Shown here piece after piece: positions 1-60,834 of a stretch of DNA of 64,000 bases. The stretch lies in contig NIVC01003764.1 of NCBI GenBank assembly GCA_002269645.1, forward strand, positions 14,001 through 78,000, in the 5' to 3' direction. The position numbers and the translations under genes were made by a program. This DNA comes from Macrostomum lignano. Taxonomy: Eukaryota. The notes beneath the pieces were generated by a model. It made no database searches, was not told the DNA's origin, and saw only the letters and a list, made by a program, of their open reading frames with translations. Position 1 is the stretch's first letter; the number at the start of each line of letters is the position of its first letter.

Positions 1-55
1 CTTAATCCTCACGGCTCTTAATCCTTTCCCTAATCCTCACCACCCATAATCCCAG

Positions 56-1407
56 ATCGAGTTCGGTTGCTGCGAAGCGGCAGAGTTCGCCCGGCAGTTG
101 CTCAGGGGCAGCATAGTGCAGCTGGAGCTGCTGTTCGCACAGCCGGCCGCTCGGCTGTTCGTGTCACCCGCCTTCGACTGGCTGCTGCAGCGGCGGATGC
201 GTCTGGCCACGGAGAACTTCATCAGGCAGCTGCTGGGACTGGCGAGTCAGCTGGTCAGGACGCTGAGCAAAGCGGAGGTGCTTGGCAATAGTTTAAACTT
301 GGTGATTTAGAGTTTGGAGCTTAGTGAATTAAAGTTTGGAGCTTAGTGAATTAGAGTTTATAGCTTAGTGAATTAGAGTTTAGGACTTTAGTGAATTAGA
401 GTTTAGAGCTTAGTGAATTAGAATTTAGCTTGTACAGTTGACGTTGCAATCTCCACCCATCGCAGGTCAACCCAGACCAGTTCCCACCAGCCGAGGCCCG
501 CAAGGTGGGCAAGGCTGCCTACCAGCTTGAGCACAAACTCAACCTTCTGACTGACCTGGCCGCGGGCATCGAACCCCGAGTCACCCTGGAGGGTGCCGAG
601 CGCGAGCGAGTGCTGGCTCTGAGATCAGCTGACTGGGCCGACCCTGCCAGCAGGCGGGCACTGGCTCGGGCCTCACTCGACAGGTAAGACGTTTTAAAGC
701 TCTTTATGTGAGGCTGTTTGACCTTCTAATGTATCCTAGTGCACTGGGACCTTGAAATGTCACCTGATTGAAATTGCAACCTTCAGGTGTTAACAGATTT
801 AAAAAGGACCTTCAAATACTTTAAATTATCGCCTCTTGGAGACAATGGTCCTTCAAATATCACCTGGTAGAGAATATAAGTTTAGTGTCTCTTGGTTAAA
901 ACTTAGACATTCAAATGTTACATAGTTAAAGCTTTGACCTTCAAATGTCACTTCGTTAAAGTTTTGACCTTCAAATGTCACTTCGTTAAAGTTTTGACCT
1001 TCAAATGTCACTTCGTTAAAGTTTTGACCTTCAAATGTCACTTCGTTAAAGTTTTGACCTTCAAATGTCACTTGGTGGAGAATATGACCTATGCTTAGGA
1101 CCATATCACACGTACCTGATGTCATCTGATTAAAGCAGTGACCTTCAAATCTCACCTGGTTAAAACTAGCACCAGGTAGTCATCAGGTGGTGACTTTAAC
1201 CTTCATATGTCACCCAGTAGAATCTCTCCTGTGACTTTTAAACTAGTTTTTCAACCTTCAAAAACGTTCTATCCCAGGCACAGAGCAGTTAAACAAACTC
1301 TGGCATCGCGAAGCAGCCGGCTGGCTGAGAACTGCCCGACAGATTTTCTCACCGACTGGCTGCAAGTTGTGCACTTTGGGAGCCACATCTCCGAGGCTGA
1401 GTCTTGA
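56..1407 (+). CDS. 3' three exons of an RlaP-like (PF10127, Pol-beta superfamily) nucleotidyltransferase; 5' part lies upstream of the window
   Basis: Exons 56-277 (cccag|ATC...GAG|gtgctt), 466-683 (cgcag|GTC...AG|gtaaga) and 1278-1407 (cccag|G...TGA) have compatible phases 0 and 2. They splice to IEFGCCEAAEFARQLLRGSIVQLELLF...FVSPAFDWLLQRRMRLATENFIRQLLGLASQ...KVGKAAYQLEHKLNLL...GIEPRVTLEGAERERVLALR...SRLAENCPTDFLTDWLQVV...*. AATAAA is at 1464-1469. The pattern resembles the C-terminal half of RlaP proteins as I recall it (E..KF..LL.KGN..LE.LF; K..YH..R; RE.LL.I; LPE.P...L..WL). The catalytic GS/DxD motif is not in the window. Confidence 0.65.
305..428. repeat. 22-bp minisatellite (GTTTRGAGCTTAGTGAATTARA) in intron
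   Basis: About 5.5 copies; GCTTAGTGAATT recurs at 319 and 341. Confidence 0.9.
920..1075. repeat. 30-bp minisatellite (GTTTTGACCTTCAAATGTCACTTCGTTAAA) in intron
   Basis: About 5 near-identical copies plus degenerate flanking copies; explains ORF 853..1155. Confidence 0.9.
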
Positions 1408-1649
1408 TACTCAGTGTGACGTCTGTTAGTCGTACAATCATAGTTCCGCTTATATTTATGGCTAATAAACACTTATTCAATTGTGATAAATATGAATAAA
1501 ATTATGTTTATGATTGTATTTATACGCTCGCATTTTATAATTTATAATAAAAAGATTTGCTTTCATGGTCAATTCTGCTGTGATAAATTTTTTAGATCCC
1601 ACCAACCCAAATCCCCATTATACTCGTACCTTCGATCCCTAAGACCTTC

Positions 1650-1995
1650 AATCCCACCACCCCTAATCCCAACCACCCTAATCCCCACCACCCCAAATCT
1701 CCACCACCCCTAATCCCCACCACCCCTAATCCCCAACACCCCTGATCATCCCCACCACCCCTAATCCCCAACACCCCTGATCATCCCCACCACCCCTAAT
1801 CCCCAACACCCCTGATCATCCCCACCACCCCTAATCCCCAACACCCCTGATCATCCCCACCACCCCTAATCCCTACCACCCCTGATCCCACCATCCCTAA
1901 TCCCACCACCCCAAATCCCACCACCCCTAATCCCACCACCCCTAACCCCACCAACCCTAATCCCACCACCCCAATCCCACCACCCTTAATCCCCA
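1650..1995. repeat. C-rich minisatellite (CCCACCACCCCTAAT core, 15-35-bp periods)
   Basis: Directly visible; CCTGATCATC recurs at 1741 and 1776. Confidence 0.85.
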
Positions 1996-3311
1996 CAACT
2001 GCTAATCAGCACCATTTTAAATTGTCACTACGGTCTAATGGTAATCAAATTTTAAAAGTAATAAATATTATAAGCAATGCTAATTAATGTATTTACACTA
2101 TTCAGCTATTCCCAATGAGAATATAAAATTCTATTTTAACAAAATGAGCTAAAATCGAACAATCATTTTGAGCTGCAATGTTTTAATTATGTACGATTTA
2201 GTTCAAAGTTTTATTTTACTTAAACATTTGAGCAAAGCAAACAAGCGAAAGAGAAAAAAATAAGCATTTAAGGTTAGGATAGGGTGATTTTTGTGATAGT
2301 GAAGAGCTGCTAAACTTTTCTACTTTAAGTAGCATATTGAAGATATTAAGAAGTTTAAACAAGCTGCATATATGAAATAACTAGTTGTACATGCAGTTGT
2401 TTAGTTGGTAGCCTTTTTTACTTAAAATTTGGCGTAAATCTGTTTACCTGCTTATAAATTAGTTTTGTGTCCGCTTAATTAGCATGACAAATAAATATTA
2501 TAAGGCGCTAGAGATGCCAGTACTGCGTTAGTAGCAATGGAAACAAAGGTGATTAGCATTGACAGAATACCTAAAGTAACAATTTTCTCCGTCCTCGAAA
2601 GAAAATTTACATCGAAAATAAAAAGATATCTATAGTTCCACTTTTCGAGGACAGCACGGCAGTTTGAAATCGCGCGAAAAATCGGTTAAGAGAAAATCGA
2701 TTTATTAAAACAAAAAGAGGTTACTTACTGAGGTAACCTTTTCGAAATTACGAAGTAGAAATTCACAGACTGACTTCCGTCTTTAAGTCGTGTTTCTCTG
2801 GCGCCAAAAAAAGCAAAAAAATATAAAAATTTCGAAATGGAAATCGAAAAAAGAGAAACACGGAAAGTTGAAAAAGACTTTCTATCGCTTCTGTTCAATT
2901 TGCGTTACTGTAAGTAGAGTGGGCTGACCATGCGAGCGCGTGTTTTGCAAAGCGGTAAAAGCTGCTAAATATACATTAGAAAGCAATAAATATATCTGAT
3001 ATATATTCGTATGTATTGGATGCATTGCTTTGTTTGAGTGACTGAGTCTCTATTTCAGCTCACTTGGACATTCCTGTGGTTGAAATTAAACAGTGTCCGG
3101 AAACTTTTGCAACACCCCTCGCATTAGCGCAATGCGGAAAAAAGCAATTAAATATGGAATGAAGATTTTATTGGATCCTCAAGTACCTTTGCTAGACCGT
3201 TTCTAGGTGAGCTATAGCTGTGTTTCAAAATTTAAAAATGTTTTGCAAACTAACAATGCGTGACTAGCCATCATTTCTTGGAATGCGAGACGCACTATAC
3301 ACTTTAAAAGG

Positions 3312-6300
3312 CTACAAGTCTGTGGTCAGATCTCTTCCACGAGAAGCCGTTTGAGTAGTGTGAGTATCGGTTGGCATCTTGTCCAGCATCCAGCCTCCAT
3401 TGTCGATGGTTGCCGGGCCAACCAGGCATTGAAATCGCAGGCCGGTGTTGCCATCCACCGGCTGAATCGTCTCCGCCCGGAACTCCAGGCCGCTATTGGC
3501 GAATTCCTGGGCGGAGGCGAACAGTTTCGGATGATGATGCCGAAGGCTGACAACGCGACGCGTCAGGTCGCGTTGCAACGCTGTCAGATTATTTCGTCTT
3601 CCAGCCCGACGCTTCTCCTGCTCCAGCTCGTTGCTCGACGTTGTCGCCGCGTCGTCGACGCACCGGACGACAGTCCAGCAGCGAAGCAGCGGGCCGCCAT
3701 CGTCACCAGTGTTGCGCGTCTGCGGGTAGCTGCTCGCCAGGGGGAGGGCGGCGCAGAGAACGAAAGTCGAACCTTGCATCGACGAGCTGCGGTCGGCTTC
3801 GGCAACGGTAGCGACGGATGCGTCAGGGTCCGCCTCTGCAGCCGGGTCGCTCCACGGCAGGAAGGTTGGCGGACGCAGCAGGGTCGGGATGTTGCTGTTG
3901 CTGCTGCTATTGTTGGACATAGAGACTCCGGATAGGACTAACTGGACGCAGCCACCGCTGTCTGCAGAGACGTTCGAAGCTCCTCGCTTAGCCAGTCGAG
4001 CCAGTGGCGGCCCGGCTCGACACGCTGCTCGTCTCAGAGCCGACCGGCAGGCGGCCAGCTGGCGGTCGAAAGCGCAGACGCGACTGTGCGCTGCCCAGTG
4101 CGCTCGACGGCAAGGGTCTGAGCAGTAGCCGACTGTGGCGCAGTTGGGGCAACCGCAGGGACAGCCGCCGTCGCCGCCACTGACGCGACTGCATCGCAGG
4201 TTGCAGCAGCGCCCAATAGCCGACGGAGCTGCTGGCAAAGCTAGCGAATCTGTTGGCTGAGTCTCCGACTTCCGCGCCGACTTCTTGGCGATACAGAACA
4301 GGGCAGCTGCTTCGTCCGCCGTTCGAGACTCGTCGTTGGAAAGTTGCGCGTTTCTACGATCGATCGACTGCAGCAGCGTTCGAGTCTCGGACATCCGGGT
4401 CAGACCGGCTTCGTAGCTCGGCGCCTCGGCGGGACCTTCAGCTAGGAATTTAACGGCTGCTTGTTCTTCTGACTGATGATTTTTCTGGTCTACGGCGTCT
4501 TTCAATCCGGTGGCGTGGACTGCGAGTGAAGAGGACCTCGTTGGTGGCGGCGGAGGCGGCGGCTTGCTGGACGTCGATAAGGTGACTTGACTCGGCTGCG
4601 GCTTCGATGAAAAGTCACTTGGTCGCAGAGTCAGAGTCAGCAGCGGAGGCGGCGGAGGCGTCGGCCGCAGTTGATCTGTTTTACTGACGTCTCCGTCAGG
4701 TGTTCGGCTGTCTAAGCTGCTCTGTTTGATGTAGCGCCTCGGCTGCGAGCCGCTCTCAGTCGACTGGTGTTTCTTGGGTTGCACCAGCTGTTGCGGCTCG
4801 GCTTGTAGACGGTTTGTCATCCCGGCTGGCAGGCTGACAAACTTTGGCATGATGAGCACCGCCCTTGACACCTGATTGGTTGCGGCCGAATCGGACATCG
4901 TTGGGGTTGCTGACGTCACAGACGAAGCCGCTGATGCTGTTGCCACCGCTGCGGCCGCTTCTGACTGAACTTTTCGTCGCCATGGATGTTGCTGTCTCTC
5001 GCCAGGTTGCTTCTGGCGGTCCCAGCATGCCGCTACCGACTGCGGCCGTCCACTGTCGCCGCCATCGCCCAATGGCAAACTGTCAATCCAGTCGGGTAGG
5101 TCAAGGCGCGACAAGGATCTGTGTGCATGACAACGGGAGAGTTTGAAATAATCATGCCTAATCCCGATCCCTGATCCCGATCCCTGATCCCGATCCCTGA
5201 TCCCGATCCCTGATCCCGATCCCTGATCCCGATCCCTGATCCCGATCCCTGATCCCGATCCCTGATCCCGATCCCTGATCCCGATCCCTGATCCCGATCC
5301 CTGATCCCGATCCCTGATCCCGATCCCTGATCCCGATCCCTGATCCCGATCCCTGATCCCGATCCCTGATCCCGATCCCTGATCCCGATCCCTGATCCCG
5401 ATCCCTGATCCCGATCCCTGATCCCGATCCCTGATCCCGATCCCTGATCCCGATCCCTGATCCCGATCCCTGATCCCGATCCCTGATCCCGATCCCTGAT
5501 CCCGATCCCTGATCCCGATCCCTGATCCCGATGACTCACCTACAGATGACCTTCTCGCTCTCAGATTTCGCCCTGGCCTCCAGCCTCTCGATGAAAGTTG
5601 GATGGCACCTGGTCTGAAGTGCTCGCTTCGACTGGCCCGCTGGCTGCTGCCTCTGCCGGTACCTGTCGCCTCCTTTTCTGCTGCCTCTGTCGGCAAGCAG
5701 GTCTTCGCTGGCCGCCCGACCGACTTCTTCCCGGCTTTCGCCGAGGCCTCCAAGATCGGCCAGGCTGCTGGCGCCTCGACGATTAACTGCGCCGATTTCG
5801 TCTAAGTTTGTCTCCGCGAAGGCTTCAACAGCGGCAGCCTCCATCAGGCAGCGGTGCAGTTCGTACAGCGACACGGACTTGCTGTCCTCGCCGCGATCTG
5901 TCAGCGGCGAGTCAGTCGGCGATTCGTCGGCATCTCTAGCGGCATCCAGATCAGTTGATTTGAATCGGCGGCGCCAAAATTCTCGCCGCTGCGCTACCAG
6001 TGTCGGCGGTGGCACCGGCGGCGGCGCCGAGCTCTGGCCGGCGAAGATTCGCAAGGCGTCTTCGTCGCTCATCAAGTGTCGCAGCTCGTAGCCGCGGTGA
6101 CTGTCGGAGCTCAGGGGCTGCTGCTGTACAATGGTCGCTTGAATCGGTGTTAGCAGCGGCTTATCGTCGTCTGGTGATGAGTCGCTGCTGTCCGGAATGA
6201 AGGCCGCCTCCACGGTCAGCGCTGCAATTGGCGGCGCCGCGTCAGTTGTCGCCGCGGCGCTCTCCTTAGCGCTCAACTCCTCTAGCTGACGCTTCAGGCT

Positions 6301-18272: not shown

Positions 18273-21200
18273 ATGGCCGGTTCTTCCTCTGGCGCTCGGC
18301 TGTTGCTTTCGTCGCCGAAAATTGCACGCAACCTGCTGAGCTTGTCGATGTCATTCCTGCTGATGTTCACCAGCTACCAGGGCCTGGCATCGTTGCAGAG
18401 CTCCATCAACTCAGTTGGCGGCCTGGGTACGGCGGGCCTGGCGGTAACTTACGCTTGCGTGGTGCCTTCGTCGCTTCTGGTGTCGCCGTTGGCTTTGGAC
18501 TGGCTGGGTGCCAAGCGGACAATGCTGCTCGGGATGCTGGGCTACGTCATCTATTTCCTCCTGAGCTTGGCGCCTGGCTGGGCCACCATCATACCCGGCT
18601 CGGCTCTGCTGGGTCTGTGCGGAGCGCCGCTCTGGGCTGGAATGAGTTTGTACACTGTGCAGCTCGCTGCCATTGCGGACGCCGAGGCTGCGGCTGACGA
18701 CAAAGGACGTCAGAATAATGGCGATAAAGGCGGCAAAAAAGTTGCCACTTTGCCAGTGTTCTTCGGAGTCTTCTTTACAATAGTTACCAGCTGTGAGTTC
18801 TCGCGCTATCGGCCGGGGGCTGTCGTTTCTGACCACGGTACGATCTTGGCAAAGGCGTTGCGCCAGGGAGTTCCCTCAGACCTGTAAATATTGACAGAAT
18901 TTACAGTAAGCGCTTTCTTGCTGGCTGGGTTTCGACTGCCTTGTAGATTTGCGGCAGTGCCCAACGCACTCTGGTGAACTCGGGAACTATTGTAATTAAA
19001 TTTCATCTTTGGTGGACATGGATTGCCAAATATACAAAAGCTATGATTTTTCACCAACCCCAGGCAATATTTGGGGCAACTTGATCTCATATTTGACGCT
19101 GGTGGATCGCAGTGATGGAGGCGTCTCCAACTCAACAGCCGCTATCAGCAATTTCAGCTGCGGCTATCGCTTTTGTCCAGCGAAACCGGCTGCTGGAGCA
19201 GAAGCACCCACCAGCGACGCCGAAGTGGAGGCGCTTGGACCCGGCGGGCTGCCCGCTGTGAAGGTGTGAAAAATGCCGAATTTAAGATTAAAGAAGAAAG
19301 CTTATTTCAAACTTTTTAACTTCAGTCCCCATGAGTGCACTACAGCAATGCATACCCACAGCACCATTGACAATTCTAGAGCACCACTGACATCCCAGAG
19401 CACCACTGACAATCCAGAGCACCACTGACATCCCAGAGCACCACTGACATCCCAGAGCACCACTGACATCCCAGAGCACCTCTGACATCCATGGAGCACC
19501 TCTGACATCCCAGAGCGCCCAGAGCACCACTGACATCCTAGAGCATCACAGACATCCCAGAGCACCACTGACATCCCAGAGCACCACTGACATCCCAGAG
19601 CACCACTGACATCCCAGAGCACCACTGACATCCCAGAGCACCTCTGACATCCATGGAGCACCTCTGACATCCCAGAGCGCCCAGAGCACCACTGACATCC
19701 TAGAGCATCACAGACATCCCAGAGCACCACTGACATCCCAGAGCACCACTGACAATCCAGAGCACCACTGACATCCCAGAGCACCACTGACATCCCAGAG
19801 CACCACTGACATCCATGGAGCACCTCTGACATCCCAGAGCGCCCAGAGCACCACTGACATCCTAGAGCATCACAGACATCCCAGAGCACCACTGACATCC
19901 CAGAGCACCACTGACATCCCAGAGCACCACTGACATCCCAGAGCACCACTGACATCCCAGAGCACCACTGACATCCCAGAGCACCACTGACATCCCAGAG
20001 CACCTCTGACATCCATGGAGCACCTCTGACATCCCAGAGCGCCCAGAGCACCACTGACATCCTAGAGCATCTCAGACATCCCAGAGCACCACTGACATCC
20101 CAGAGCACCACTGACAATCCAGAGCACCACTGACATCCCAGAGCACCACTGACATCCCAGAGCACCACTGACATCCCAGAGCACCACTGACATCCCAGAG
20201 CACCACTGACATCCCAGAGCACCACTGACATCCCAGAGCACCACTGACATCCCAGAGCACCACTGACATCCCAGAGCACCACTGACATCCCAGAGCACCT
20301 CTGACATCCATGGAGCACCTCTGACATCCCAGAGCGCCCAGAGCACCACTGACATCCTAGAGCATCACAGACATCCCAGAGCACCACTGACATCCCAGAG
20401 CACCACTGACATCCCAGAGCACCTCTGACATCCATGGAGCACCTCTGACATCCCAGAGCGCCCAGAGCACCACTGACATCCTAGAGCATCACAGACATCC
20501 CAGAGCACCACTGACATCCCAGAGCACCACTGACATCCCAGAGCACCTCTGACATCCATGGAGCACCTCTGACATCCCAGAGCGCCCAGAGCACCACTGA
20601 CATCCTAGAGCATCACAGACATCCCAGAGCACTATTGACATCCTCAGTCCTTTTTCATCCCTAGTCCACTATGAGTTGTTGTTAATGACAGATGGAACAC
20701 TTTTCGAATATTATGTAGCCATCTTTACTCCGTTAAATTAAATATCCATTTCAGTTTTACACACTGATGTCCTGTTTCATCGCAACAGCAGTGGTCTCCG
20801 TGCTGGTGATGTTCTTCCTCGTAGATCGAAACGATCCACCGAAAAACGAGGAGCCAGTCAAAGCCGGAACGCAGCAGCAAGTCTCTCAACTGTTAGAGAG
20901 GCTTCGTAAAGCGCTGGCTCAATTGGTGGATCCGAGGCAATTGCTTCTGGTGCCTTTGACCATCAATGCTGGACTGTCACAGGCTTTCTCACTCGGTGAC
21001 TTTACTGAGGTTTGAGACACGCGAAGCTTAAGTTGTTTAATCGACCCGTATCGTTTGCCTGACATTGATGTACATCGCTGGCGAATGGGTATTTTTACAT
21101 TACGTCGGCTAACGACAAGGTTATACGGCGGCAAAACGTCAGTGTAGCGTAATACGAGCTAGTACCCACTTCGAGTGGGTTTTCTAATAGCCCCCTTTAG

Positions 21201-28266: not shown

Positions 28267-31200
28267 ATGAGCCGTGTACGCCAGAACTTCCATGAGGACT
28301 GCGAGGCCGCTATTAACAAGCAGATCAACATGGAGCTGTATGCCTCGTACACCTACCAGGCGATGCACTTCCATTTCTTGCGCGAAGATGTTGCCTTGAA
28401 GAGTATCGCCGGATTCTTCGGCAAGAGCTCCGAGGAGGAGCGAGAGCATGCCGAGAAGCTGATGAAGTACCAGAACATGCGCGGCGGCACCATTGTCTTG
28501 CAAGATGTACAGAAGCCCGCCAAGCAGACCTGGGGCTCCATGCTAGAAGCTATTCAGGATGCTCTGGAGCTTGAGAAAGTTGTCAATCAGGTGAGCTTCA
28601 GTGTATAGCAGGCCTTTTTAAGCCTTTTAAATAAAATTAGGCTCTATCATCAGGCCTAACTGCCTAGGCCTAACACTACTAGGCCTACAGCAACAGGAAT
28701 TTTTAATTAACCTATAACTATAAGATAAGTATAATTTGCTTTGTAGAATGTATACTTTAATATTATTTATAACAAACAAAATAACATAATGTAGAATATA
28801 GGGACCAATTCACTTTTTAATTAAACAGTTTCATTTTATTTAAGATTTATTCTTTATATATATATTTGTTAAATTAAATCTAAATGTAATTCACATAAAA
28901 AGAAAAGGGTAAGGCTTAGCCTAATGCAATGAAATTGAAATAAACTATGCTAGGGGTGTTTCCTGTTCACTGAGAATCTTACTAAATGCCACCAAAAGCT
29001 GTCCCAGGGCTCTTATTTATTCTTTAGCTTCACTCTTTGCCACCAAAGTTGTTGCAGGCCTGTTAGTTCTGTGTTTCTACTTAATGTACTTTTTGCATAA
29101 ATGTACTACTAATATTGGTAGCGTCTACTTATCTATTTATATAGGTAGCGTCTACTTATCTAATTATATTGGTAGCATCTACTTATCTATTTATATAGGT
29201 AGCGTCTACTTATCTAATTATATTGGTAGCATCTACTTATCTATTTATATAGGTAGCGTCTACTTATCTAATTATATTGGTAGCATCTACTTATCTATTT
29301 ATATAGGTAGCGTCTACTTATCTAATTATATTGGTAGCATCTACTTATCTATTTATATAGGTAGCGTCTACTTATCTAATTATATTGGTAGCATCTACTT
29401 ATCTAATGGTAGGCCTAGCGGTTGTACATGTACTGTAACTTTTGCCTGAGTGGTCTATTGGCACTGTCTACTCTTATATCTCTCAGTCCTGGCATTCCCA
29501 GGATCAAAGGGTCATAGCTTTATATTTTCCCTGCCCTGAAGCGACTTTCCCTCACTATGAAGTGGTTCTTCTGCCCTGAGGCGAATTCACTATTTTCTAA
29601 TGTTTTCCTACCCTGAGGCAATTCTCGCTTTTTAGCGGATCTTAATACTACTCCCGATTTGGGGCTTCTACTCTAAGAAATGATTAAATCTTTAAGTGAT
29701 TTCAATATTTAGAACAAACTAAGTTTGTTTATTGAAAACCAAGAGGCAGCAAACGGTCACGATTTATTTTTTCTAGCCCAATCTGGGCTCTTATTTATAT
29801 TATGAATTGGCATAATTTAAACAAAATAATAATTCCCAAAAATATTTTTACAGATCACAACGTTTAAACAAAATATTTAGTTTTTTGTGCAAATTTGAAC
29901 AAAAGCTTTTCTAAGAAATACAGTATTCGTGCATAAAAATAGTTATTACTTCAGTACTTCTTAGGCACTATATCAAAACCAAGGCCAAGGCCCAAGCAAG
30001 GCAAGGGAATACTAAATATATATAATAAGTTTTATTAAAAATCAAAATATATAGAAAATATTAGGCCCACTTATAAGACAATTTTGCCTAGGCCAAGGCC
30101 TATGTATGGCACAATTCCTTGGTTAAAACCAAAATAAATTTACTTCTTTAATAATTGTGATAATTCTTTTTTATATGCTTTTCAAATAACTGCACCTTAA
30201 TGGTCTATGCTTATATAGTTATTAATAATAATTTAGTAAGTAATCATTTTGCAATTTTACCAATTTTCTATGGCTATAAAATTTAATTTGTTATAAAAAT
30301 GCAATTTAAATTAGGCCCCCTAAGGCCTAGTCCAGGGGTCGGCAAACTGCGGCCCGCGGGCCAGATCCGGCCCGCGTCATCTTCAAGTCCGGCCCGCAGC
30401 ACTCTTACTATCTGACAATGTAAAAGTGGCCCGCGAACCAATTTTGTGTTGAAACATTCAACTTTTCAAGCAAAATTAGCTTTCACCTCGGCATTCCTAT
30501 CACAATACTGTGTCAATTTCAATTGTCGTGTTGTTGGTGGCATTTGGTCTATCATATAAAATTGTCGGCTATCCTTTAGTAGAATCGTTCGTTAAATTAA
30601 TTTTTGTTTGAATTTGATTTCTTTCTATTTTTAGAGTCCAAAAATATGAAACAAGTGAACAATCTAACAGTTTACAATTAAATATACTGGCAGCTAAATT
30701 GTTTGTTATAGTCGGTTGCCACATCACGACACGAGGGTACTATTTTAACGTTGGGTAATAGGGGTAATAGTGTCACTGGGTAATTTTATCCAGGACACAT
30801 TTTTCCACAATTTTTGAATTTGTGCGTTGATGTCAGGAATTCTTAAAATAGTATAAGTTTTGCGCGCACAAAGCATTAATATGTTTATGGTCAAAGTTGG
30901 TGACAGTGCGGAGCTGGGGGACTTTTAAAGGGAGATGCATTTGAGATTGAAAAATTAGCTACCGAGCTGCCATACTGGGATTCAAGTCAAGCCACTGCTT
31001 ACTTTGCTGATTTTGGACTATTACTCTCTGGATGGCTGGATCTGGATGACCAGTGGCCTCAAGTTGGATTGTGTCACTGTTTAACTTTCAATAGTACCCT
31101 CATGTCGTGATTTGGCAATTAACTATAACAAACAATTTAGCTGCCAGTACATGTTAAACTGTTGGATCGTTCACTTGTTTACATTTTTACTCTAAAATTA

Positions 31201-33516
31201 GAAATGAATTAAATTCAAGCGAAAAAATAATTTAACAAACGATTCTATAGGATACCAAATTGTCATTTATAGCCTCAATTTGTTGTGCATTTTTTTGGCC
31301 CACCACCTCAGCCAGTCGTCCAATCCGGCCTGCACTGAAAAAAGTTTGCCGACCCCTGGCCTAGTCTAATTGCAGCCTAGTTTAATCTAGTAGCCTTTTC
31401 TATAGGCCTATGGCTATAGTATTTTAAACCTTTAGTTTTATCATTACTATTATATAATATTATACTTTTTATTTCTAAAAATGGTTATCATTTTAGTTAT
31501 GTATATTTTCACTTTACTATAGTAGAAATTCTAGTATGATTTAAAATGTTATTCTTTTAGAAATTTTGAAAAATAGTTATTATGACATTTATATTAGATT
31601 GTTTTTAATTAAATTAGAATTCCTTTTATCCATTGCTTATTTATAGCTAGGCTTATATATTTAAGTTTTTTATAGTAAACTATTACTCAAGAGATATAGG
31701 CATTTTGGTCCTTTTGATAATTTAGTCTATGCCACCCCTGATCCTTCAGACAGTATCTTCCCTGATCCTTTAAGCACCACCCTCCTTGATCCTTCAGACA
31801 CCACCCTCCCTGATCCTTTAGACAGTATCTTCCCTGATCCTTTAAGCACCACCCTCCTTGATCCTTCAGACAGCGCCCTCCCTGATTATTCAGACACCAC
31901 CCCCCTGATCCTTTAGACAGTATCTTCCCTGATCCTTTAAGCACCACCCTCCTTGATCCTTCAGACAGCGCCCTCCCTGATTATTCAGACACCACCCCCC
32001 TGATCCTTTAGACAGTATCTTCCCTGATCCTTTAAGCACCACCCTCCTTGATCCTTCAGACAGCGCCCTCCCTGATTATTCAGACACCACCCCCCTGATC
32101 CTTTAGACAGTATCTTCCCTGATCCTTTAAGCACCACCCTCCTTGATCCTTCAGACAGCGCCCTCCCTGATTATTCAGACAGCACCCTTCCTGATCCTTC
32201 AGACAGCACCCCTGATCCTTCAGAGTCAGACAGCACCCTCCCTGATCCTTCAGGCAGCACCCTCCCTGATCCTTCAGACAGCACCCTCCCTGATCCTTCA
32301 GACAGCACCCTCCTTGATCCTTCAGACAGCGCCCTCCCTGATTCTTTAGACAGCACCCTCCCTGATCCTTCAGACAGCACCCCTGATCCTTCCGACAGCA
32401 CCCTCCCTGATCCTTCAGGCAGCACCCTCCTTGATCCTTCAGACGCCACCCTCCCTGATCCTTTAGACAGTATCTTCCCTGATCCTTCCGACAGCACCCT
32501 CCCTGATCCTTCAGACAGCACCCCTGATCCTTCCGACAGCACCCTCCCTGATCCTTCAGGCAGCACCCTCCTTGATCCTTCAGACGCCACCCTCCTTGAT
32601 CCTTCAGACAGCACCCTCCCTGATCCTTCCGACAGCACCCTCCCTGATCCTTCAGGCAGCACCCTCCTTGATCCTTCAGACGCCACCCTCCCTGATCCTT
32701 TAGACAGTATCTTCCCTGATCCTTCAAGCAGCACCCTCCTTGATCCTTCAGACGCCACCCTCCCTGATCCTTTAGACAGTATCTTCCCTGATCCTTCAAG
32801 CACCACCCTCCTTGATCCTTCAGACAGCACCCTCCCTGATCCTTCCGACAGCACCCTCCCTGATCCTTCAGGCAGCACCCTCCTTGATCCTTCAGACGCC
32901 ACCCTCCCTGATCCTTTAGACAGTATCTTCCCTGATCCTTCAAGCACCACCCTCCTTGATCCTTCAGACAGCACCCTCCCTGATCCTTCAGACAGCACCC
33001 TCCCTGATCCTTCAGACACCACCCTCCCTGATCCTTCAGACACCACCCTCCCTGATCCTTCAGACACCACCCTCCCTGATCCTTCAGACACCACCCTCCC
33101 TGATCCTTCAGACAACACCCTCCCTGATCCTTCAGACAACACCCTCCCTGATCCTTCAGACGGCACCCTCCCTGATCCTTCAGGCACCCCACCCTCCCTG
33201 ATCCTTCAGGCACCCCACCCTCCCTGATCCTTCAGACACCACCCTCCCTGATCTTTCAGACACCACCCTCCCTGATTCTTCAGACACTAAAACCTATTCA
33301 CCCACCTCCCCACCCCACCAGAGCTTGCTGGATCTGCAGAAACTCGCTGACAGTCGCGGTGACCCCCAGCTGTGCGATTTTATCGAAGGCGAATACCTGA
33401 AAGAGCAGGTGGAGTCCATCAAGGAGCTGGCTGACCACGCCACTAATTTGAAGCGAGTTGGCTCAGGTCTCGGCGAGTTCATGTACGACAAGGAAGCTTT
33501 CGGCGAATCTTCTTGA
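28267..33516 (+). CDS. FTH1: Ferritin, heavy-chain (ferroxidase) type, 172 aa, 2 exons
   Basis: Exon 1 is 28267-28590 (CAG|gtgagc) and exon 2 is 33322-33516 (ccaccag|AGC). [30 protein letters not shown]...[11 protein letters not shown]...[10 protein letters not shown]|SLLDL...[23 protein letters not shown]...GLGEFMYDK. Ferroxidase ligands corresponding to E27, Y34, E61/E62, H65, E107 and Q141 are present. Confidence 0.97.
29105..29406. repeat. 54-bp (2x27) minisatellite in ferritin intron
   Basis: TAATTATATTGG recurs at 29161 and 29215; two alternating 27-bp variants. Confidence 0.9.
30333..31358. mobile_element. Non-autonomous hAT (Charlie-like) DNA transposon / MITE, 1,026 bp
   Basis: Perfect 16-bp TIRs CAGGGGTCGGCAAACT...AGTTTGCCGACCCCTG, an exact 8-bp TSD GCCTAGTC (30325-30332 and 31359-31366), subterminal GGCCCGC motifs and no transposase ORF. 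Confidence 0.93.
31733..33287. repeat. 24-bp minisatellite (CCCTCCCTGATCCTTCAGACAGCA) in ferritin intron
   Basis: About 64 units with variant blocks; explains the LKDQGGCC and EGSGRVLS ORFs. Confidence 0.95.
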
Positions 33517-34651
33517 AAATTCTTGATTGGTGTGCATTGATATTGACTTCAGGAGAGACTTCAGGAGCAATTTAGTAGCTATAGAATTCACAGCTGTGTG
33601 CAAAAAATAATCTGTACGAAGTTCTGTTATAATCCCGTTTAATCTTGTCATTATTTATACAGTAGTTAAGTTGATATAAACCGTTATAAATTGTTGTTTA
33701 AGTAACCCGATATCATGGATCTTTTCAAGCAATTGATATGTTTAACTGTATTAGTTATTATATTACTTTGAATAATACTTTTCCGAGCTAAATAAATTGA
33801 ATAATTTCTGTAGGGCAAGCTTTCCGAATTCCAAAATTATAGTTCTGCAAAATATAAAATTTTCTAGTTTGTTTGTAGTCTCTTATTTTCTACGATAGTA
33901 TTGATAGTTGTTGGTGTTGTCTAATCTCTAATCTCCTCTTTCCTTTTCTTTTCTAATTCCTCTCCTCTTCTCTAATGACGAAAATGATAACTATTTAAAT
34001 TATATTAAAGTACGATATCATTCAGATTAAAGGACCATGACTTATTTATAGTCGTAGTCTATTTCTATAGCAACGCTGATGAAAAACTAATTTGGGCAAT
34101 CTATTTTAAAAAGTTAATAATTTTCGTTGCTTACTACTTACATGTAGAAGTAGACAGTTGAAGTGCTAGGATTTTAAAGGCAGTCAGCCATAATTTTGAA
34201 GCGTAGTACTGTTTAATGCATTACTGACAAATGACCCCCCAAGTTCTTTTTATATTAAAAGCTGTGAGGTAATACAATTTACCAATATGACAGTAGACTG
34301 CATGCTTTCTCACATAAGAATGATCTCTCTTAGTATCTCTTGATCATGAGGTCTGATATGCAATTTCCGGTTAATCAAGGCACAGTATACATACATATCT
34401 GCGTATTCCTGTGAATATTCAAAGGATTAATCTTATGTCGATGTATCAGCTTAAAGAGCTTGTTTAGAAATTATTTCTCGCGAATGAATATACTAATCCC
34501 TCTATATTACAGTGTGTTTCTTATCAAGCATTCTCATTGCATGTATGTATTACAACTGCATGTATGTACGTGTACATTCTCTGCAAGTTTAATGTAGTTG
34601 ACGAAGTCTCTCTGTACAATGTACTATAGTCTTTTGGTGCCGCGAGAGGGA

Positions 34652-35862
34652 AAGGAGATTGGCACCGAGAAGGAATAGAGATTGGCATCGAGAAGGAAGG
34701 GAATGGCGCCGAGAAGGAATGGAGATTGACGTCGAGAAGGAATGGAGATTGGCACCGAGAAGGAATGGAGATTGGCGCCGGGAAGGAATGTAGATTGGCG
34801 TCGAGAAGGAATGGAGATTGGCACCGAGAAGGAATGAATATTGCCGCCGAGAAGGAATGGAGATTGGCGCCGAGAAGGAATGTAGATTGGCGTCGAGAAG
34901 GAATGGAGATTGGCGCCGAGAAGGAATGGATATTGGCGCCGAGAAGGAATGGAGATTGGCGCCGAGAGGGAATGGAGATTGGCGCCGGGAAGGAATAGGA
35001 ATGGCGTCGAGAGGGAATGGAGATTGGCGCCGAGAAGGAATGGAGATTGGCGCCGAGAAGGAATGGAGATTGGCGCCGAGAGGGAATATAATGGAGATTG
35101 GCGCCGGGAAGGAATGGGAATGGCGTCGAGAGGGAATTGAGATTGGCACCGAGAAGGAATGGAGATTGGCGCCGAGATGGAATCGAGATTAGCATCGAGA
35201 AGGAATGGAGATTGGCGTCGGGAGGGAATGGATATTGGCGCTGAGAGGGAATGGAGATTGGCGCCGAGAAGGAATTGAGATTGGCGCCGAGAAGGAATGG
35301 AGATTGGCGCCGAGAGGAAATGGAGATTGGCGCCGAGAGGGAAAGGAGATTGGTGCCGAGATGGAATCGAGATTGGCGTCGAGAGGGAATGGAGATTGGC
35401 GCTGAGAGGGAATGGAGATTGGCGCCGAGAAGGAATGGAGATTGGCGCCGAGAAGGAATGGAGATTGGCGCCGAGAGGAAATGGAGATTGGCGCCGAGAA
35501 GGAATGGATATTGGCACTGAGAAGGAATAGAGATTGGCATCGAGAAGGAAGGGAATGGCGCCGAGAAGGAATTGAGATTGGCGCCGAGAGGAAATGTAGA
35601 TTGGCGCCGAGAAGGAATGGAGATTGGCACCGAGAAGGAATGGAGATTGGCGCTGAGAAGGAATTGAGATTGGCGCCGAGAAGGAATGGAGATTGGCGCC
35701 GAGAGGAAATGGAGATTGGCGCCGAGAGGGAAAGGAGATTGGTGCCGAGAAGGAATTGAGATTGGCGCCGAGAAGGAATGGAGATTGGCGCCGACAATGA
35801 ATGGAGATTGGCGCCGACAATGAATGGAGATTAGCGCCGACAATGAATGGAGATTAGCGCCG
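34652..35862. repeat. 23-bp minisatellite (GAGAAGGAATGGAGATTGGCGCC)
   Basis: About 52 units; explains the multi-frame SAPISIPSRRQ ORFs. Confidence 0.95.
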
Positions 35863-36404
35863 AGAAGACAGACAGGAGAGCAGTTCGGGCAGAATTTGAA
35901 TGACGGCTAGGCAGCCTTGAGAAGAATGCCATACACGGTTCAGGTGCCAGTTCCATACCTAGAGTCTGCGTGCTTCCTAATTTTGCCAAGATCGTTCAAC
36001 TTCAGCTATCGTGACTCTGACCCTGAATTCACCAGTCAGCTCATCTCACCACCCAGACCTTTTGCCCCTCAATCTTCTAAGGTTTTTTTATATTCTCAAA
36101 ATCGCAAAGCAGCAAGACGACCCAGAGAGGTTCAAGCAAAGACCAGGAAGAGGCTAAAGATTGCATTGTTGAGTTGCTTTTAGCTCACGGGCTGATGGAG
36201 CGCAGAGGAGACTGCAAGCTTCCGGTGAGGCCGTTCTTCCACTCTGGTAGCTATTATATAAAAATATTACGGGCCCGACCCGTTGCAGTGAGGAAGTCAG
36301 GGGGGACAAAAGTTGATTCCATGCAGGCTTCTTCCAGAAAATTAATTCTCTGCGTGCCACGGGATGGTAGAAGCCACGGCTTTTGGCTTTTGTATAGCAT
36401 TCCT

Positions 36405-37497
36405 CACCCAGAATCCCCAATCTTCCCCATCCAGAATCCTCAATTTTCCCCACCCAGAGGCCTCAATCTCCCCACACAGAATCGTCAATCTTCCCCATCC
36501 AGAATCCTCAATCTTCCCCATCCAGAATCCTCAATCTTCCCCATCCAGAATCCTCAATTTTCCCCACCCAGAGGCCTCAATCTCCCCACACAGAATCGTC
36601 AATCTTCCCCATCCAGAATCCTCAATCTTCCCCATCCAGAATCCTCAATCTTCCCCATCCAGAATCCTCAATCTTCTTCATCCAGAATCCTCAATCTTCT
36701 TCATCCAGAACCCTTAATCTTCCCCATCCAGAATACCCAATCTTCCCCATCCAGAACACCCAATCTTCCCCATCCAGAACACCCAATCTTACGCATCCAG
36801 AATACCCAATCTTCCCATCCAGAATACCCAATCTTCCCATCCAGAATACCCAATCTTCCCCATCCAGAATACCCAATCTTCCCCATCCAGAATCCTCAAT
36901 CTTCCCCATCCAGAATCCTCAATCTTCCCCATCCAGAATACCCAATCTTCCCCATCCAGAACACCCAATCTTACGCATCCAGAATCCCCAATCTTCCCAT
37001 CCAGAATACCCAATCTTCCCCATCCAGAATCCTCAATCTTCCCCATCCAGAATCCTCAATCTTCCCCATCCAGAATACCCAATCTTCCCCATCCAGAACA
37101 CCCAATCTTACGCATCCAGAATACCCAATCTTCCCATCCAGAATACCCAATCTTCCCCATCCAGAATCCTCAATCTTCCCCATCCAGAATCCTCAATCTT
37201 CCCCATCCAGAATCCTCAATCTTCCCCATCCAGAATCCTCAATCTTCCCCACCCAGAATACCCAATCTTCCCCACCCAGAACACCCAATCTTCCCCATCC
37301 AGAACACCCAATCTTCCCCATCCAGAACACCCAATCTTCCCCATCCAGAACACCCAATCTTCCCCATCCAGAACACCCAATCTTCCCATCCAGAATACCC
37401 AATCTTCCCATCCAGAATACCCAATCTTCCCCATCCAGAATACCCAATCTTCCCCATCCAGAATACCCAATCTTCCCCATCCAGAATCCTCCAATCT
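36405..37497. repeat. 23-bp minisatellite (CTTCCCCATCCAGAATCCTCAAT)
   Basis: About 47 units; explains ORF 36174..37499. Confidence 0.95.
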
Positions 37498-37558
37498 GAT
37501 AGCAAATGTAGCTATTTACTTGAGTCTGTACAAACACAGACATTTTTGTCCATAAATT

Positions 37559-38050: not shown

Positions 38051-38147
38051 GCGGCCCGTAAGCCTCTCTAATCCAGCTCTCGGGTCCTTTGAAACTTCAC
38101 AATGGCAATGGGGCCCGCTTAGGTTTGTCACACTTCTCAGCTCTCTT
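38051..38147 (+). mobile_element. hAT-like subterminal fragment (same family as 47880-47984 and 63655-63770)
   Basis: GCGGCCCGTAAGCCTCTCTAATCC...GGTCCTTTGAAACTTCAC...GGCCCGCT...CTTCTCAGCTCTCT. Confidence 0.6.
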
Positions 38148-39303
38148 CTATCCTCTCTTCTCCTCACTCATCTCTTCTCTCCTCTCCTCTTCTTTCTTCT
38201 CCTCTCCTCTCCTCTCCTCTCCTCTCCTCTCCTCTCCTCTCCTCTCCTCTCCTCTCCTCTCCTCTCCTCTCCTCTCCTCTCTTCTCCTCTCTTCTCTCCT
38301 CTCCTCTCCTCTTCTTTCTTCTCCTCTCCTCTCCTCTCTTCTCTCCTCTCCTCTCTTCTCTTCTCTCCTCTCCTCTCCTCTCCTCTCCTCTCCTCTCCTC
38401 TCCTCTCCTCTCCTCTCCTCTCCTCTCCTCTCTTCTCCTCTCTTCTCTCCTCTCCTCTCCTCTCTCTTGTCCTCTCTCCTCTCCTCTCCTCTCCTCTCTT
38501 CTCTCCTCTCCTCTCCTCTCCTCTCCTCTCCTCTCCTCCTCTCTCCTCTCCTCTCCTCTCTCCTCTCCTCTCTTCTCTTCTCTTCTCTCCTCTCCTCTCC
38601 TCCTCTCCTCTCCTCTCCTTCCCTCTCTTCTCCTCTCTTCTCTCCTCTCCTCTCCTCTCTCTTGTCCTCTCCTCTCCTCTCCTCTCTCCTCTCCTCTCCT
38701 CTCCTCTCCTCTCCTCTCTTCTCCTCTCTTCTCTTCTCTCCTCTCCTCTCTTCTCTCCTCTCCTCTCCTCTCTCCTCTCCTCTCTTCTCTTCTCTCCTCT
38801 CCTCTCCTCTCCTCTCCTCTCCTCTCCTCTCCTCTCCTCTCCTCTCCTCTCCTCTCCTCTCCTCTCTTCTCTCTCTTCCTCTCTCCTCTCCTCTCTCTTG
38901 TCCTCTCTCCTCTCCTCTCCTCTCTCCTCTCCTCTCCTCTCCTCTCCTCTCTCCTCTCCTCTCCTCTCTCCTCTCCTCTCTTCTCTTCTCTTCTCTCCTC
39001 TCCTCTCCTCCTCTCCTCTCCTCTCCTTCCCTCTCTTCTCCTCTCTTCTCTCCTCTCCTCTCCTCTCTCTTGTCCTCTCCTCTCCTCTCCTCTCTCCTCT
39101 CCTCTCCTCTCCTCTCCTCTCTTCTCCTCTCTTCTCTTCTCTCCTCTCCTCTCTTCTCTCCTCTCCTCTCTTCTCTCCTCTCCTCTCCTCTCCTCTCCTC
39201 TCTCCCCTCCTCTCCTCTCTCCTCTCCTCTCCTCTCCTCTCCTCTCCTCTCCTCTCTCCTCTCTCTCTCTCTCTCTCTCCTCTCCTTTCTTCTCTCCTCT
39301 CCT

Positions 39304-39342
<39 letters not shown>

Positions 39343-39480
39343 CTCTCTCCTCTCTCTCTCTCTCTCTCTCCTCTCTCTCTTCTCCACTCTCTCCTCTCCT
39401 CTCTCCTACCTCTCTCTCTCTCTCCTCCCTCTCTCTCTCCTACCCTCTCTCTCTCTCCTCTCCTCTCTCCTCTCGTCTCT
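38140..39480. repeat. (CTCTC/CCTCT)n polypyrimidine tract, about 1.3 kb
   Basis: Almost pure C/T on the + strand; explains the SSPLL and ERRGE ORFs. Confidence 0.98.
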
Positions 39481-40219
39481 GTTCTCTTTTCTTACTCGTA
39501 AAAGGGAAAGATGAGAAGGGCGGATCGAACCCTGGGCCCCAGGTTCAATTCCGCGCGCGTCTGTCTGTATTAATGACCCTTTTCAAATCTGTTTGCTTCT
39601 TCAATCAGTAAAAGATTAGAAAAAAACAATCAGATTCTGTGAGAGAATCAAAGGGGAAGGAACTTACGGAAAAGAGCATTGTTGTGCAGACAAAGGTGGA
39701 TTCACAGGCCCGAGAAATTCTTGATTGAGCTAAGTGGCCCTGTAAGTCTTGCTTTTTTGACACTTCTTCTGCAGCACTAGAGATTCAAACCCTTATTAAG
39801 CTGACACCATCAATTCAACAGCTGCATGTGCCGTGGCTTGCAAAGATTTCTATCAGGAAGTTTTTCTGAAGCCGAAAGGAAACTTTTAGAGGATTTTTTC
39901 ACTCTTTTTGTCACCCCGCGCTGCAGTCCTCGCGGTACAGAGGGAGAGAGAAGGGGCCAGAATGCCTTCAGGGGCCCACGAGCCTCGCTCTTGAGCCTGT
40001 CTGACAGCTCAGATCCAAGAGCAAGTGTTTGCTTTTGGTTTGAGTTGATTTTTTTTAACAATCAAGATTAAGAGGAACTGCGGAGCCAGGCCATGTGCCC
40101 TAAAGGAATTTTCTTTCTTGCGACAAGATACCAACTTTTTAATTTATCATTTCGCTTTATCAACTATAGGGGTCAGTGCAGGTAGTTAACCTTGGACAAC
40201 CGGAGTAGAATTACACTAG

Positions 40220-40742
40220 GCACCAGCACCAAGGGGCGCCAGCACCAAGGGGCGCCAGCACCAAGGGGCGCCAGCACCAAGGGGCGCCAGCACCAAGGGG
40301 CGCCAGCACCAAGGGGCGCCAGCACCAAGGGGCGCCAGCACCAAGGGGCGCCAGCACCAAGGGGCGCCAGCACCAAGGGGCGCCAGCACCAAGGGGCGCC
40401 AGCACCAAGGGGCGCCAGCACCAAGGGGCGCCAGCACCAAGGGGCGCCAGCACCAAGGGGCGCCAGCACCAAGGGGCGCCAGCACCAAGGGGCGCCAGCA
40501 CCAAGGGGCGCCAGCACCAAGGGGCGCCAGCACCAAGGGGCGCCAGCACCAAGGGGCGCCAGCACCAAGGGGCGCCAGCACCAAGGGGCGCCAGCACCAA
40601 GGGGCGCCAGCACCAAGGGGCGCCAGCACCAAGGGGCGCCAGCACCAAGGGGCGCCAGCACCAAGGGGCGCCAGCACCAAGGGGCGCCAGCACCAAGGGG
40701 CGCCAGCACCAAGGGGCGCCAGCACCAAGGCGCCAGCACCAA
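40220..40742. repeat. 16-bp minisatellite (CACCAAGGGGCGCCAG), essentially homogeneous
   Basis: About 32 identical copies. Confidence 0.97.
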
Positions 40743-41541
40743 GCTTATACCCTTAACCTTGTCGAGTTGGTTAAGTGTCACTATTCTGTGTTTTTACTGC
40801 ATGCCCAGAGTTGCAATCAACTTCAGTCACCAGCAGAATTTCGGTTGAAGGAGAAATTCAATGCGAGCCTAAAACAGTTCACAAACCACAAACACACTTC
40901 GTGGATGTTAAAAAAGTCATAAATAAATTTGTTTTATGATTCTGCTATTATATAGGTTAGGTTGTATGTTTCTAAAGAGATAAACTCAGGGTCTACAACT
41001 GTTCAGTTGGTTTTTTAGAACAACATTTTTACGCAGCGTCCGCACGCTACAGTGGCGGTCACTGCCGCTGACTTGACAGGCAGAGAGCACAAAGACTCGC
41101 AGGTCCAGCCCAGATCCTTTCTCGGGAAATCCTGAAGCTTTGCCAGACGAAAGAGTGAATAAAGCAAGCAGCAAGAAGGAGAAGCAGTCTCTCTCTCTCG
41201 CGTGATGTGGGAAGACGAGAGCAGAGAGCGGAACCAATGCGCTCAGCTTCCTTCCTCCGCATTGGCTAGCCCTGCTCCCGACTCTGCCCTGATCCCCACC
41301 CACCTCACGTTTTTCAATTCCCTAGCTAAGATGAGGAAATATTTCACACCTCAACCATCCCGTTCTCATTTTATAGAGACTTTACTTGCATTTGGTGAGG
41401 GCTGCACACTCGACCAGTCAGTCAGGCAGAGCCATTGGCACATCAAAGTCAAAGCAACTTCCTGAGCAGCTCTCGTTTATTCTCTAGCAAAAGCTGTGTC
41501 TTCTTAATACTGTAGCTGTCATATAACTGCTTAACCTGCGA

Positions 41542-47500: not shown

Positions 47501-47579
47501 GTCGGCTGCCGCCGCCGCCGCCGCATCGCTGTACCACCCGAACATCTCCGGCTACCCAGGCGCGCAATACTATGCCTAG
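41542..47579 (+). CDS. FEV: ETS transcription factor of the ERG/FLI1/FEV subfamily, most like FEV/Pet-1 (no PNT domain seen)
   Basis: Exons are 41542-41623, 41859-41945, 43241-43450 (poly-Q) and 46999-47579, with all introns phase 1. The ETS domain reads [15 protein letters not shown]...[84 protein letters not shown] and the Ala-rich tail are FEV-like. The ETS exon is certain; the first two exons are less so. Confidence 0.85.
41632..41791. repeat. 11-bp minisatellite (TTCTCCCTGCA) in ETS intron 1
   Basis: About 14 copies starting about 10 nt after the donor. Confidence 0.9.
42494..43113. repeat. 16-bp minisatellite (AAGTTTAGGTCTTGTG) in ETS intron 2
   Basis: About 38 copies. Confidence 0.95.
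43996..46093. repeat. 14-bp minisatellite (CAGCGCCCATAGAA), about 2.1 kb, in ETS intron 3
   Basis: About 150 units with internal block duplications; explains the [14 protein letters not shown] ORFs. Confidence 0.97.

Positions 47580-54682: not shown

Positions 54683-60834
<6,152 letters not shown>

Follow-up and report, generated by a model that had tools for sequence, protein, structure and literature searches.

Is an RNA repair-type nucleotidyltransferase of bacteria and phages encoded by a native, spliced gene in an animal genome, and could it act on RNA there? This question is raised by positions 56 to 1407 of a 64,000-nucleotide stretch of DNA from the flatworm Macrostomum lignano (contig NIVC01003764.1, positions 14,001 to 78,000, forward strand; the whole stretch is called the window in the following), in which an initial annotation made from the sequence alone had proposed a gene of the RlaP family (Pfam PF10127) of Pol-beta-type nucleotidyltransferases (NTases). 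Our analysis makes it very likely that the locus is a native RlaP-family gene encoding a divergent member. The wider statement that this native spliced gene acts as an untemplated RNA 3′-nucleotidyltransferase appears probable, with clearly less certainty.

Re-derivation of the gene structure from the sequence yielded the same three phase-compatible GT-AG exons as described in the initial annotation (Table 1). Joined together they comprise 570 nt in one intact frame, i.e. 189 codons and a TGA stop codon, and the first candidate poly(A) signal, AATAAA, follows 57 nt past this stop. The GC content of the exons is 63%, that of the introns 36–37%. As an in-frame TAA at positions 47–49 stops extension of the upstream frame beyond approximately base 50, the AG at 54–55 represents the acceptor and the window opens inside the preceding intron; the exons for the N-terminal domain, including the GS and DxD motifs and about 35 more residues, lie upstream of window base 1. 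In the first exon, GAG at positions 59–61 encodes the residue at the alignment position of the third catalytic carboxylate in the Pol-beta NTase fold; the remainder of the exon codes for the initial helices of the helical domain with LLRGSIVQLELLF, the counterpart of the family motif LLKGNPNvlELLF. The central helices of this domain with the conserved motifs K..Y...HK and G..P..(G)E.R...L.R are encoded by the second exon and the C-terminal helix R..RL.EN...FL..W by the third. Judged by the match to a known M. lignano protein and by the end-to-end alignment with a conserved family, both described below, this exon structure is far beyond chance. The minus strand under the exons contains no gene but only repeat-derived open reading frames (ORFs), and no RNA genes were found in the 64-kb window.

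The sole close database match of the spliced peptide is P0001 (E = 2e-94), a UniRef entry of 269 residues from M. lignano named 'NTP_transf_2 domain-containing protein'. A tblastn comparison of P0001 with the window revealed 100% identity over exons 2 and 3, and over exon 1 up to a difference in splicing, while residues 1–99 have no counterpart in the window. P0001 is itself an N-terminally truncated fragment; the full flatworm protein probably resembles the two-domain orthologues of about 610 residues introduced below. The splice pair used by P0001 is in frame and conforms to GT-AG, but drops 19 codons (SQLVRTLSKAEVNPDQFPP). At this site a helix of similar length is present in all relatives according to the family alignment, and in the AlphaFold model the SQLVRTLSKAEVNPDQFPP residues form part of a continuous, confidently modelled helix. 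The longer exon model of the initial annotation is therefore preferred over that of P0001.

Direct comparison with PF10127, the check which the initial annotation had suggested for its family call, returned no match: the gathering score of 23 bits was reached neither by the window peptide nor by P0001, and membership therefore rests on transitive and profile-level comparison. The window peptide is a partial domain of a divergent member. An exhaustive phmmer search with P0001 against 1.84 billion representatives identified 24 relatives (best non-self E = 4e-18), most of them approximately 600 residues long and aligned at their C-terminus, the nearest being animal or unnamed eukaryotic proteins. 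Nine of ten relatives scanned scored 31–77 bits with PF10127, the exception being P0005, a fragment of 220 residues, and the orthologues carry a precomputed PF10127 label. Even the segments equivalent to the window peptide matched PF10127 on their own in 10 of 15 relatives (best E = 5e-8). Alignment of the family profile built for the window peptide with single-domain PF10127-labelled proteins by hhalign gave a probability of 99.1% (E = 1.2e-18, 164 columns); proteins of this kind were provided by a search of a 5.8-billion protein set with profile A1, in which 8000 word-sharing candidates were scored and seven proteins returned. Searches of the PDB with the family profiles A1 and A3 returned chance matches only. 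Among the phage protein families of PHROG, the window peptide matched solely phrog_388, annotated as 'nucleotidyltransferase' (E = 4.4e-4), which was matched also by P0001 (E = 1.7e-10), by bona fide RlaP (E = 2.7e-42) and by the animal orthologues. The RlaP call, made initially from motifs of the C-terminal half, is thus supported by five independent, indirect lines, namely the relatives, their segments, the hhalign comparison, phrog_388 and the fold.

The fold was assessed with an AlphaFold2 (AF2) model of the window peptide, which is all-helical with nine helices and has a predicted local distance difference test (pLDDT) score of 89.8. In a Foldseek search against the viral structures of BFVD, the 13 best matches showed a probability of 1.0 and template modelling (TM) scores of 0.46–0.67. 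All functional names among these 13 were phage 'nucleotidyltransferase' or 'RNA repair pathway protein', the latter being the wording of the Pfam description of PF10127; of the others among the 13, six were unnamed, one was an 'Uncharacterized protein' and one was Gp218 of Bacillus phage G. The structural comparison proposed at the outset led to phage proteins of the RlaP type, and model and matches together show the helical domain and terminal helix known from the crystal structure of PfRlaP. The same helical-only model gave no meaningful match in the PDB, the copy of which appears to contain no RlaP structure.

With regard to the active site, a profile alignment placed Glu2 of the window peptide (IEF) in one column with the aspartate of the bacterial 'eWD' motif and with the glutamate or aspartate of all eukaryotic relatives. 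Glu7, five residues further on, corresponds to the family-invariant glutamate. The GS...SDxD motif, expected upstream by the initial annotation, was found in P0001 as GSRMYGLSTPQSDVD, just upstream of the part shared with the window; these motifs, hG[GS] and [DE]x[DE], lie upstream of window base 1 and are present in P0001, a model with about 35 residues fewer than its relatives between DxD and IEF. Across the window-encoded part, 37 positions are at least 85% conserved in 38 family members, and 22 of them are identical in the window peptide; the residues kept include E, E, Q, G, Y, H, K, P, R, R, R, E and W. The C-terminal domain is collinear with the eukaryotic relatives from end to end, through to the shared C-terminus W..L..VR. 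By sequence, the flatworm gene is divergent and not wrecked.

What form does the family take in eukaryotes? The orthologues are proteins of about 610 residues, all labelled "uncharacterized", and occur in many bivalves, gastropods, a chiton, the brachiopod Lingula, the annelid Owenia and the nemertean Lineus, and beyond Spiralia in the sponges Ephydatia and Sycon and in the protists Diphylleia, Platysulcus and Chrysochromulina. Vertebrates, arthropods and nematodes were absent from the named matches listed, no search having been aimed at their absence. The N-terminal half of the orthologues aligned with the C-terminal RlaP domain (hhalign 96.7%, E = 4e-10), but its GS and DxD motifs are lost and replaced by ...TCPW... 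(GS to CP) and ...HN.L.... From these sequences, the eukaryotic form is read as a tandem of a catalytically dead RlaP-like unit and a subsequent live unit. In agreement with a tandem, the model of the full-length Mytilus orthologue (pLDDT 93) shows the strand and helix pattern of an NTase plus helical unit twice; its best PDB matches are the Pol-beta NTases ANT(4′), a structural-genomics NTase, Hailong HalB and LinB. One protist protein, P0012 from Platysulcus tardus (1025 residues), has an N-terminal YTH domain of the N6-methyladenosine reader type followed by RlaP-like units, of which the first (GSRRYNLHSADSDTD) and the last (GSYMYDLHTARSDED) have kept the catalytic motifs. This fusion provides circumstantial support for an RNA substrate of the family.

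The gene appears at home in its genome. The G+C content at third codon positions (GC3) is 0.74 for the three exons and 0.64–0.84 for neighbouring animal genes, and the neighbours in the window encode animal domains (MYND, ferritin, ETS, P4-ATPase and UNC-93). Animal neighbours and a GC3 value within the host range indicate a resident animal gene rather than contamination. In a rough neighbour-joining (NJ) tree, the flatworm sequence grouped with an unnamed eukaryotic protein and a mollusc clade, its exact position being weakly supported; sponges were placed near, protists farther out, and prokaryotic-type RlaP formed the outgroup. In Mytilus, introns of the C-terminal domain were located near residues 423, 468, 482, ~529 and ~565, as estimated from the borders of tblastn high-scoring segment pairs at a locus not identical to the query protein. 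The three junctions in the window correspond to Mytilus residues ~443/444, 515/516 and 580, none of which coincides with these introns; as a test of common descent, the unshared positions are neutral. The orthologous locus of Mytilus californianus (L001, 10001–31826) extends over about 22 kb with approximately 13 exons, and a gene with a SAC3/GANP domain is located there on the opposite strand. Based on the NJ tree, the shared two-domain build, the presence of introns and the host-like codon composition, we favour an old eukaryotic gene, presumably passed on by vertical descent in Spiralia and sponges with losses in other lineages, over recent transfer. Of the two origins left open by the initial annotation, the patchily retained ancestral enzyme is thus preferred, since orthologues with the same two domains exist across Spiralia, sponges and several lineages of protists; a recent import from bacteria or phages is effectively excluded.

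Biochemical knowledge of the family comes from PfRlaP and PaRlaP of Pseudomonas fluorescens and Pseudomonas aeruginosa, which add one or two nucleoside monophosphates (NMPs) onto RNA 3′-OH ends with a preference for damaged RNAs (Carruthers, Fatma & Huang 2025 preprint, PMC12776372). In the PfRlaP structure, the NTase domain faces the helical domain across a cleft and the final helix packs back on the NTase domain; the same study mentions 'a small number' of eukaryotic PF10127 members and assigns T4 NrdC.11 to PF10127 (PMC12776372). The flatworm gene belongs to the same family as Pseudomonas RlaP by profile comparison and shares with it the NTase and helical domains with a back-packing terminal helix, the three catalytic carboxylate positions as judged from the window peptide and P0001 and, presumably, NMP transfer to RNA 3′-OH. 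However, the bacterial enzyme has one domain only, with about 250–260 residues, and is encoded in an RtcB/RtcA operon, whereas the flatworm gene is spliced and its orthologues have about 610 residues with an extra, inactivated domain in front. Furthermore, the third carboxylate is a glutamate in the flatworm gene and an aspartate in Pseudomonas RlaP, and the KGNPN motif of RlaP corresponds to KGSVV in animals and RGSIV in the flatworm gene. No RNA ligase was found among the ORFs of at least 110 residues inspected in the 64-kb window, but since eukaryotic genes are not organised in operons, neighbourhood to an RNA ligase, to which RlaP owes its name, is hardly applicable here. The phage RlaP-type NTases represented by phrog_388 were matched directly as hidden Markov models by both the window peptide and P0001, and structurally the window model matched them best (TM 0.6–0.67); they differ in being single-domain proteins, thought to counter host anticodon nucleases, and their identity is 10–19%. 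ANT(4′), a kanamycin nucleotidyltransferase, and HalB also combine a Pol-beta NTase with a helical domain and were top PDB matches of the Mytilus model in Foldseek (probability 0.99–1.0), but these matches are weak (E = 2.5e-3 to 0.1) and show no detectable sequence similarity. Their acceptors differ as well, ANT(4′) using an aminoglycoside hydroxyl and HalB synthesising DNA oligomers.

By homology with Pseudomonas RlaP, a mechanism of RNA 3′-end addition can be proposed for the flatworm protein, for and against which we consider the chances evenly balanced. Gene structure, homology, fold and taxonomic spread are shown by the present analysis; catalytic competence, an RNA substrate and a biological role are what we infer. 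The window encodes the strand with the third metal-binding carboxylate (IEF), the terminal helix and the whole helical domain, which makes up the wall on the far side of the substrate cleft. Two divalent metals would be held by D, D and E, and one or a few NMPs would be added without template to an RNA 3′-OH, e.g. of a cleaved or trimmed tRNA, either ahead of ligation or as a tailing mark; the dead N-terminal unit may serve as a binding or regulatory module. A broader scenario, which we offer tentatively as it is somewhat more doubtful than the mechanism itself, is that Spiralia, sponges and scattered protists keep an active two-domain RlaP which model organisms appear to lack, and that this enzyme restores or tags damaged RNAs, e.g. 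tRNA halves, at their 3′ ends before RtcB-type ligation, the dead N-terminal RlaP domain being an RNA-binding or regulatory module.

Several observations weigh against a functional RlaP enzyme acting on RNA. Neither the 189-residue peptide nor the 269-residue P0001 had any hit in an hmmscan search of Pfam and NCBIfam with E values up to 10, and neither was matched in a sequence search of the PDB. Of all animal members, that of M. lignano diverges most, with 31–39% identity to its relatives, and 15 of the 37 conserved positions are altered, including a Y to C exchange beside the invariant glutamate and the change of KGNPN/KGSVV to RGSIV. In addition, P0001 runs from ...SDVDYLL straight into IEFGCC..., so that about 35 residues found in every relative are absent; in the relatives this segment between DxD and the third carboxylate comprises a strand, a helix and the ENRG loop, and the gap may be due either to an exon missed by the gene predictor or to a real, fold-breaking deletion. 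Finally, the nearest solved structures, ANT(4′) and HalB, act on small molecules or DNA, and thus the fold alone is no proof of an RNA substrate. The Macrostomum copy could be regarded as a decaying or non-functional paralogue of the spiralian tandem-RlaP gene, i.e. an expressed pseudogene, an explanation which would account for the divergence, for the absence from P0001 of some 35 core residues together with 19 helix residues, and for the satellites filling introns and flanks. We consider it improbable, as the three exons are open with intact GT-AG borders and a stop codon at the usual C-terminus of the family, the catalytic G-S, D-x-D and E are all present, the first two in P0001, the AF2 fold of the peptide is confident and the gaps in P0001 are explained equally well by poor gene prediction.

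A protein of the same fold and family might also have another job, namely that of an innate-immune sensor or signal synthase producing a second messenger or oligonucleotide like OAS, cGAS/CD-NTases or HalB. Immune genes typically show such a patchy spread, rich in invertebrates and protists, and one of the best fold matches in the PDB is to HalB, which synthesises oligodeoxyadenylate (probability 0.99–1.0). OAS2 and OAS3 consist of tandem NTase units of which the N-terminal one or ones are catalytically dead and the last is active, and the dead domain before a live one in the RlaP orthologues recalls this order. The resemblance is, however, an analogy of architecture only, as OAS belongs to a different NTase family and tandem RlaP has no OAS1_C domain. 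The match to HalB is weak (E ~0.02, TM 0.2 by query length) and common to generic NTases, none of five family members examined had a PADLOC match, and the orthologues, seemingly single-copy and ~40–57% identical across molluscs, are more conserved than fast-evolving immune sensors tend to be. As moreover addition of one or two NMPs to RNA ends is the activity of the only relatives with known biochemistry (PMC12776372), we regard an immune synthase as unlikely, if slightly less so than a pseudogene. Far less credible than either is recent horizontal transfer from a bacterium or phage, or bacterial contamination. Such an origin might be suspected because bacteria and viruses account for the overwhelming majority of RlaP proteins (PMC12776372), but it is effectively refuted by the spliceosomal introns, the host-like GC3 and flanking animal genes, the closest relatives, which are animal proteins with a eukaryote-specific two-domain architecture, and the rough NJ tree, in which the flatworm groups with molluscs and away from prokaryotic-type RlaP. 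A native gene for a probably RNA-directed RlaP enzyme remains our preferred interpretation.

The version of RlaP conserved in animals and protists thus has an orthologue in the flatworm; this version shows a distinctive dead-plus-live tandem build, which, as far as can be told, seems not to have been described before. RlaP was reportedly named by Burroughs and Aravind in 2016. In the full-text literature, which did not cover this naming paper, RlaP work was confined to bacteria and phages and no paper on eukaryotic RlaP was found, in line with the initial annotation, to which no characterised animal member was known; one survey lists PF10127 among NTase families. RNA interference and transgenesis are established in Macrostomum lignano. 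An activity was assigned to RlaP only in the December 2025 preprint and for the two Pseudomonas enzymes only (PMC12776372), eukaryotic members being unstudied. The gene and its orthologues are, however, already public with a PF10127 label in dozens of RefSeq entries, which makes this no discovery of an unknown family, lowers its novelty and leaves no surprise at the database level. The initial annotation had stated that novelty would drop if the gene belonged to a broadly conserved, characterised metazoan family; the family is indeed broadly conserved in lophotrochozoans and sponges, but it is uncharacterised. The locus is of value because it draws attention to an enzyme which is unstudied and amenable to experiments, and not because of a new principle. 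It opens the testable question whether 3′ nucleotides are restored in RNA repair or RNA-based defence of non-model animals. If an active two-domain RlaP restores RNA 3′ ends there, this would be an undescribed step of animal RNA repair or RNA surveillance.

Table 1. Exons, introns and signals of the RlaP-type gene and further features of the window (slashes mark splice borders).
Feature	Position	Strand	Remarks
3′ end of upstream intron	1–55	+	satellite-like CTAATCC-type repeat; acceptor AG at 54–55
Coding exon, 222 nt, 74 codons, begins I-E-F	56–277	+	acceptor ...ataatcccag/, donor /gtgctt
Alternative GT donor CGA/gtcagc	245–246	+	used by the P0001 model (donor 245/246), paired with acceptor 490/491
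Intron, 188 nt, GT..AG, 36% GC	278–465	+	22-bp minisatellite unit at 290–428
Coding exon, 218 nt, ends in phase 2	466–683	+	acceptor ...catcgcag/, donor /gtaaga
Intron, 594 nt, GT..AG, 37% GC	684–1277	+	30-bp minisatellite unit at 886–1073
Last coding exon, 130 nt	1278–1407	+	acceptor ...tatcccag/; stop TGA at 1405–1407
3′ untranslated region	1408–1551	+	candidate poly(A) signals AATAAA at 1464, 1495, 1546
C-rich 16/35-bp satellite	1653–2007		consensus CCCACCACCCCTAATC, ~22 copies
ORF of 813 residues	3312–5753	-	MYND zinc finger (Pfam 23.4 bits)
Perfect 13-bp satellite CCTGATCCCGATC	5157–5532		29 copies
Exon-sized ORF, UNC-93-like protein	18273–18887	+	27 bits
Exon-sized ORF, ferritin	28267–28608	+	89 bits
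Exon-sized ORF, C-terminal half of ETS DNA-binding domain	47118–47579	+	66 bits
Overlapping ORFs, P4-type phospholipid-translocating ATPase	54683–56275 and 56077–57726	+	PhoLip_ATPase_N, E1-E2_ATPase, Cation_ATPase, PhoLip_ATPase_C
Nine long mini- or microsatellite blocks	19302–20435, 32080–33213, 34524–35843, 36174–37499, 38089–39501, 40173–40848, 43962–46107, 58284–59498, 62589–63367

The remaining features of the window are those of a repeat-rich animal genome. The ferritin, ETS and UNC-93-like ORFs belong to ordinary animal genes and confirm the metazoan context. For the P4-type ATPase, the frame change around 56077–56275 suggests a short intron or a frameshift. The ORF with the MYND zinc finger crosses the 13-bp satellite, which is translated there as GSGSGIGIRDRDQ repeats; this satellite may be intronic and the ORF partly an artefact.

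The C-rich satellite is located just 3′ of the RlaP-type gene, and a degenerate relative of it (CTTAATCC/CCTAATCC) fills the end of the upstream intron. The sequence CCCTAATCCC occurs in 12 copies in the window compared to 0.1 expected, 11 of the 12 lying inside this array; despite its telomere-like look it is an internal satellite. The nine long blocks give rise to spurious ORFs of 200–700 residues on both strands and to strong GC and AT skews, e.g. a GC skew of -0.69 at 38–40 kb, and a large share of the window consists of tandem repeats.

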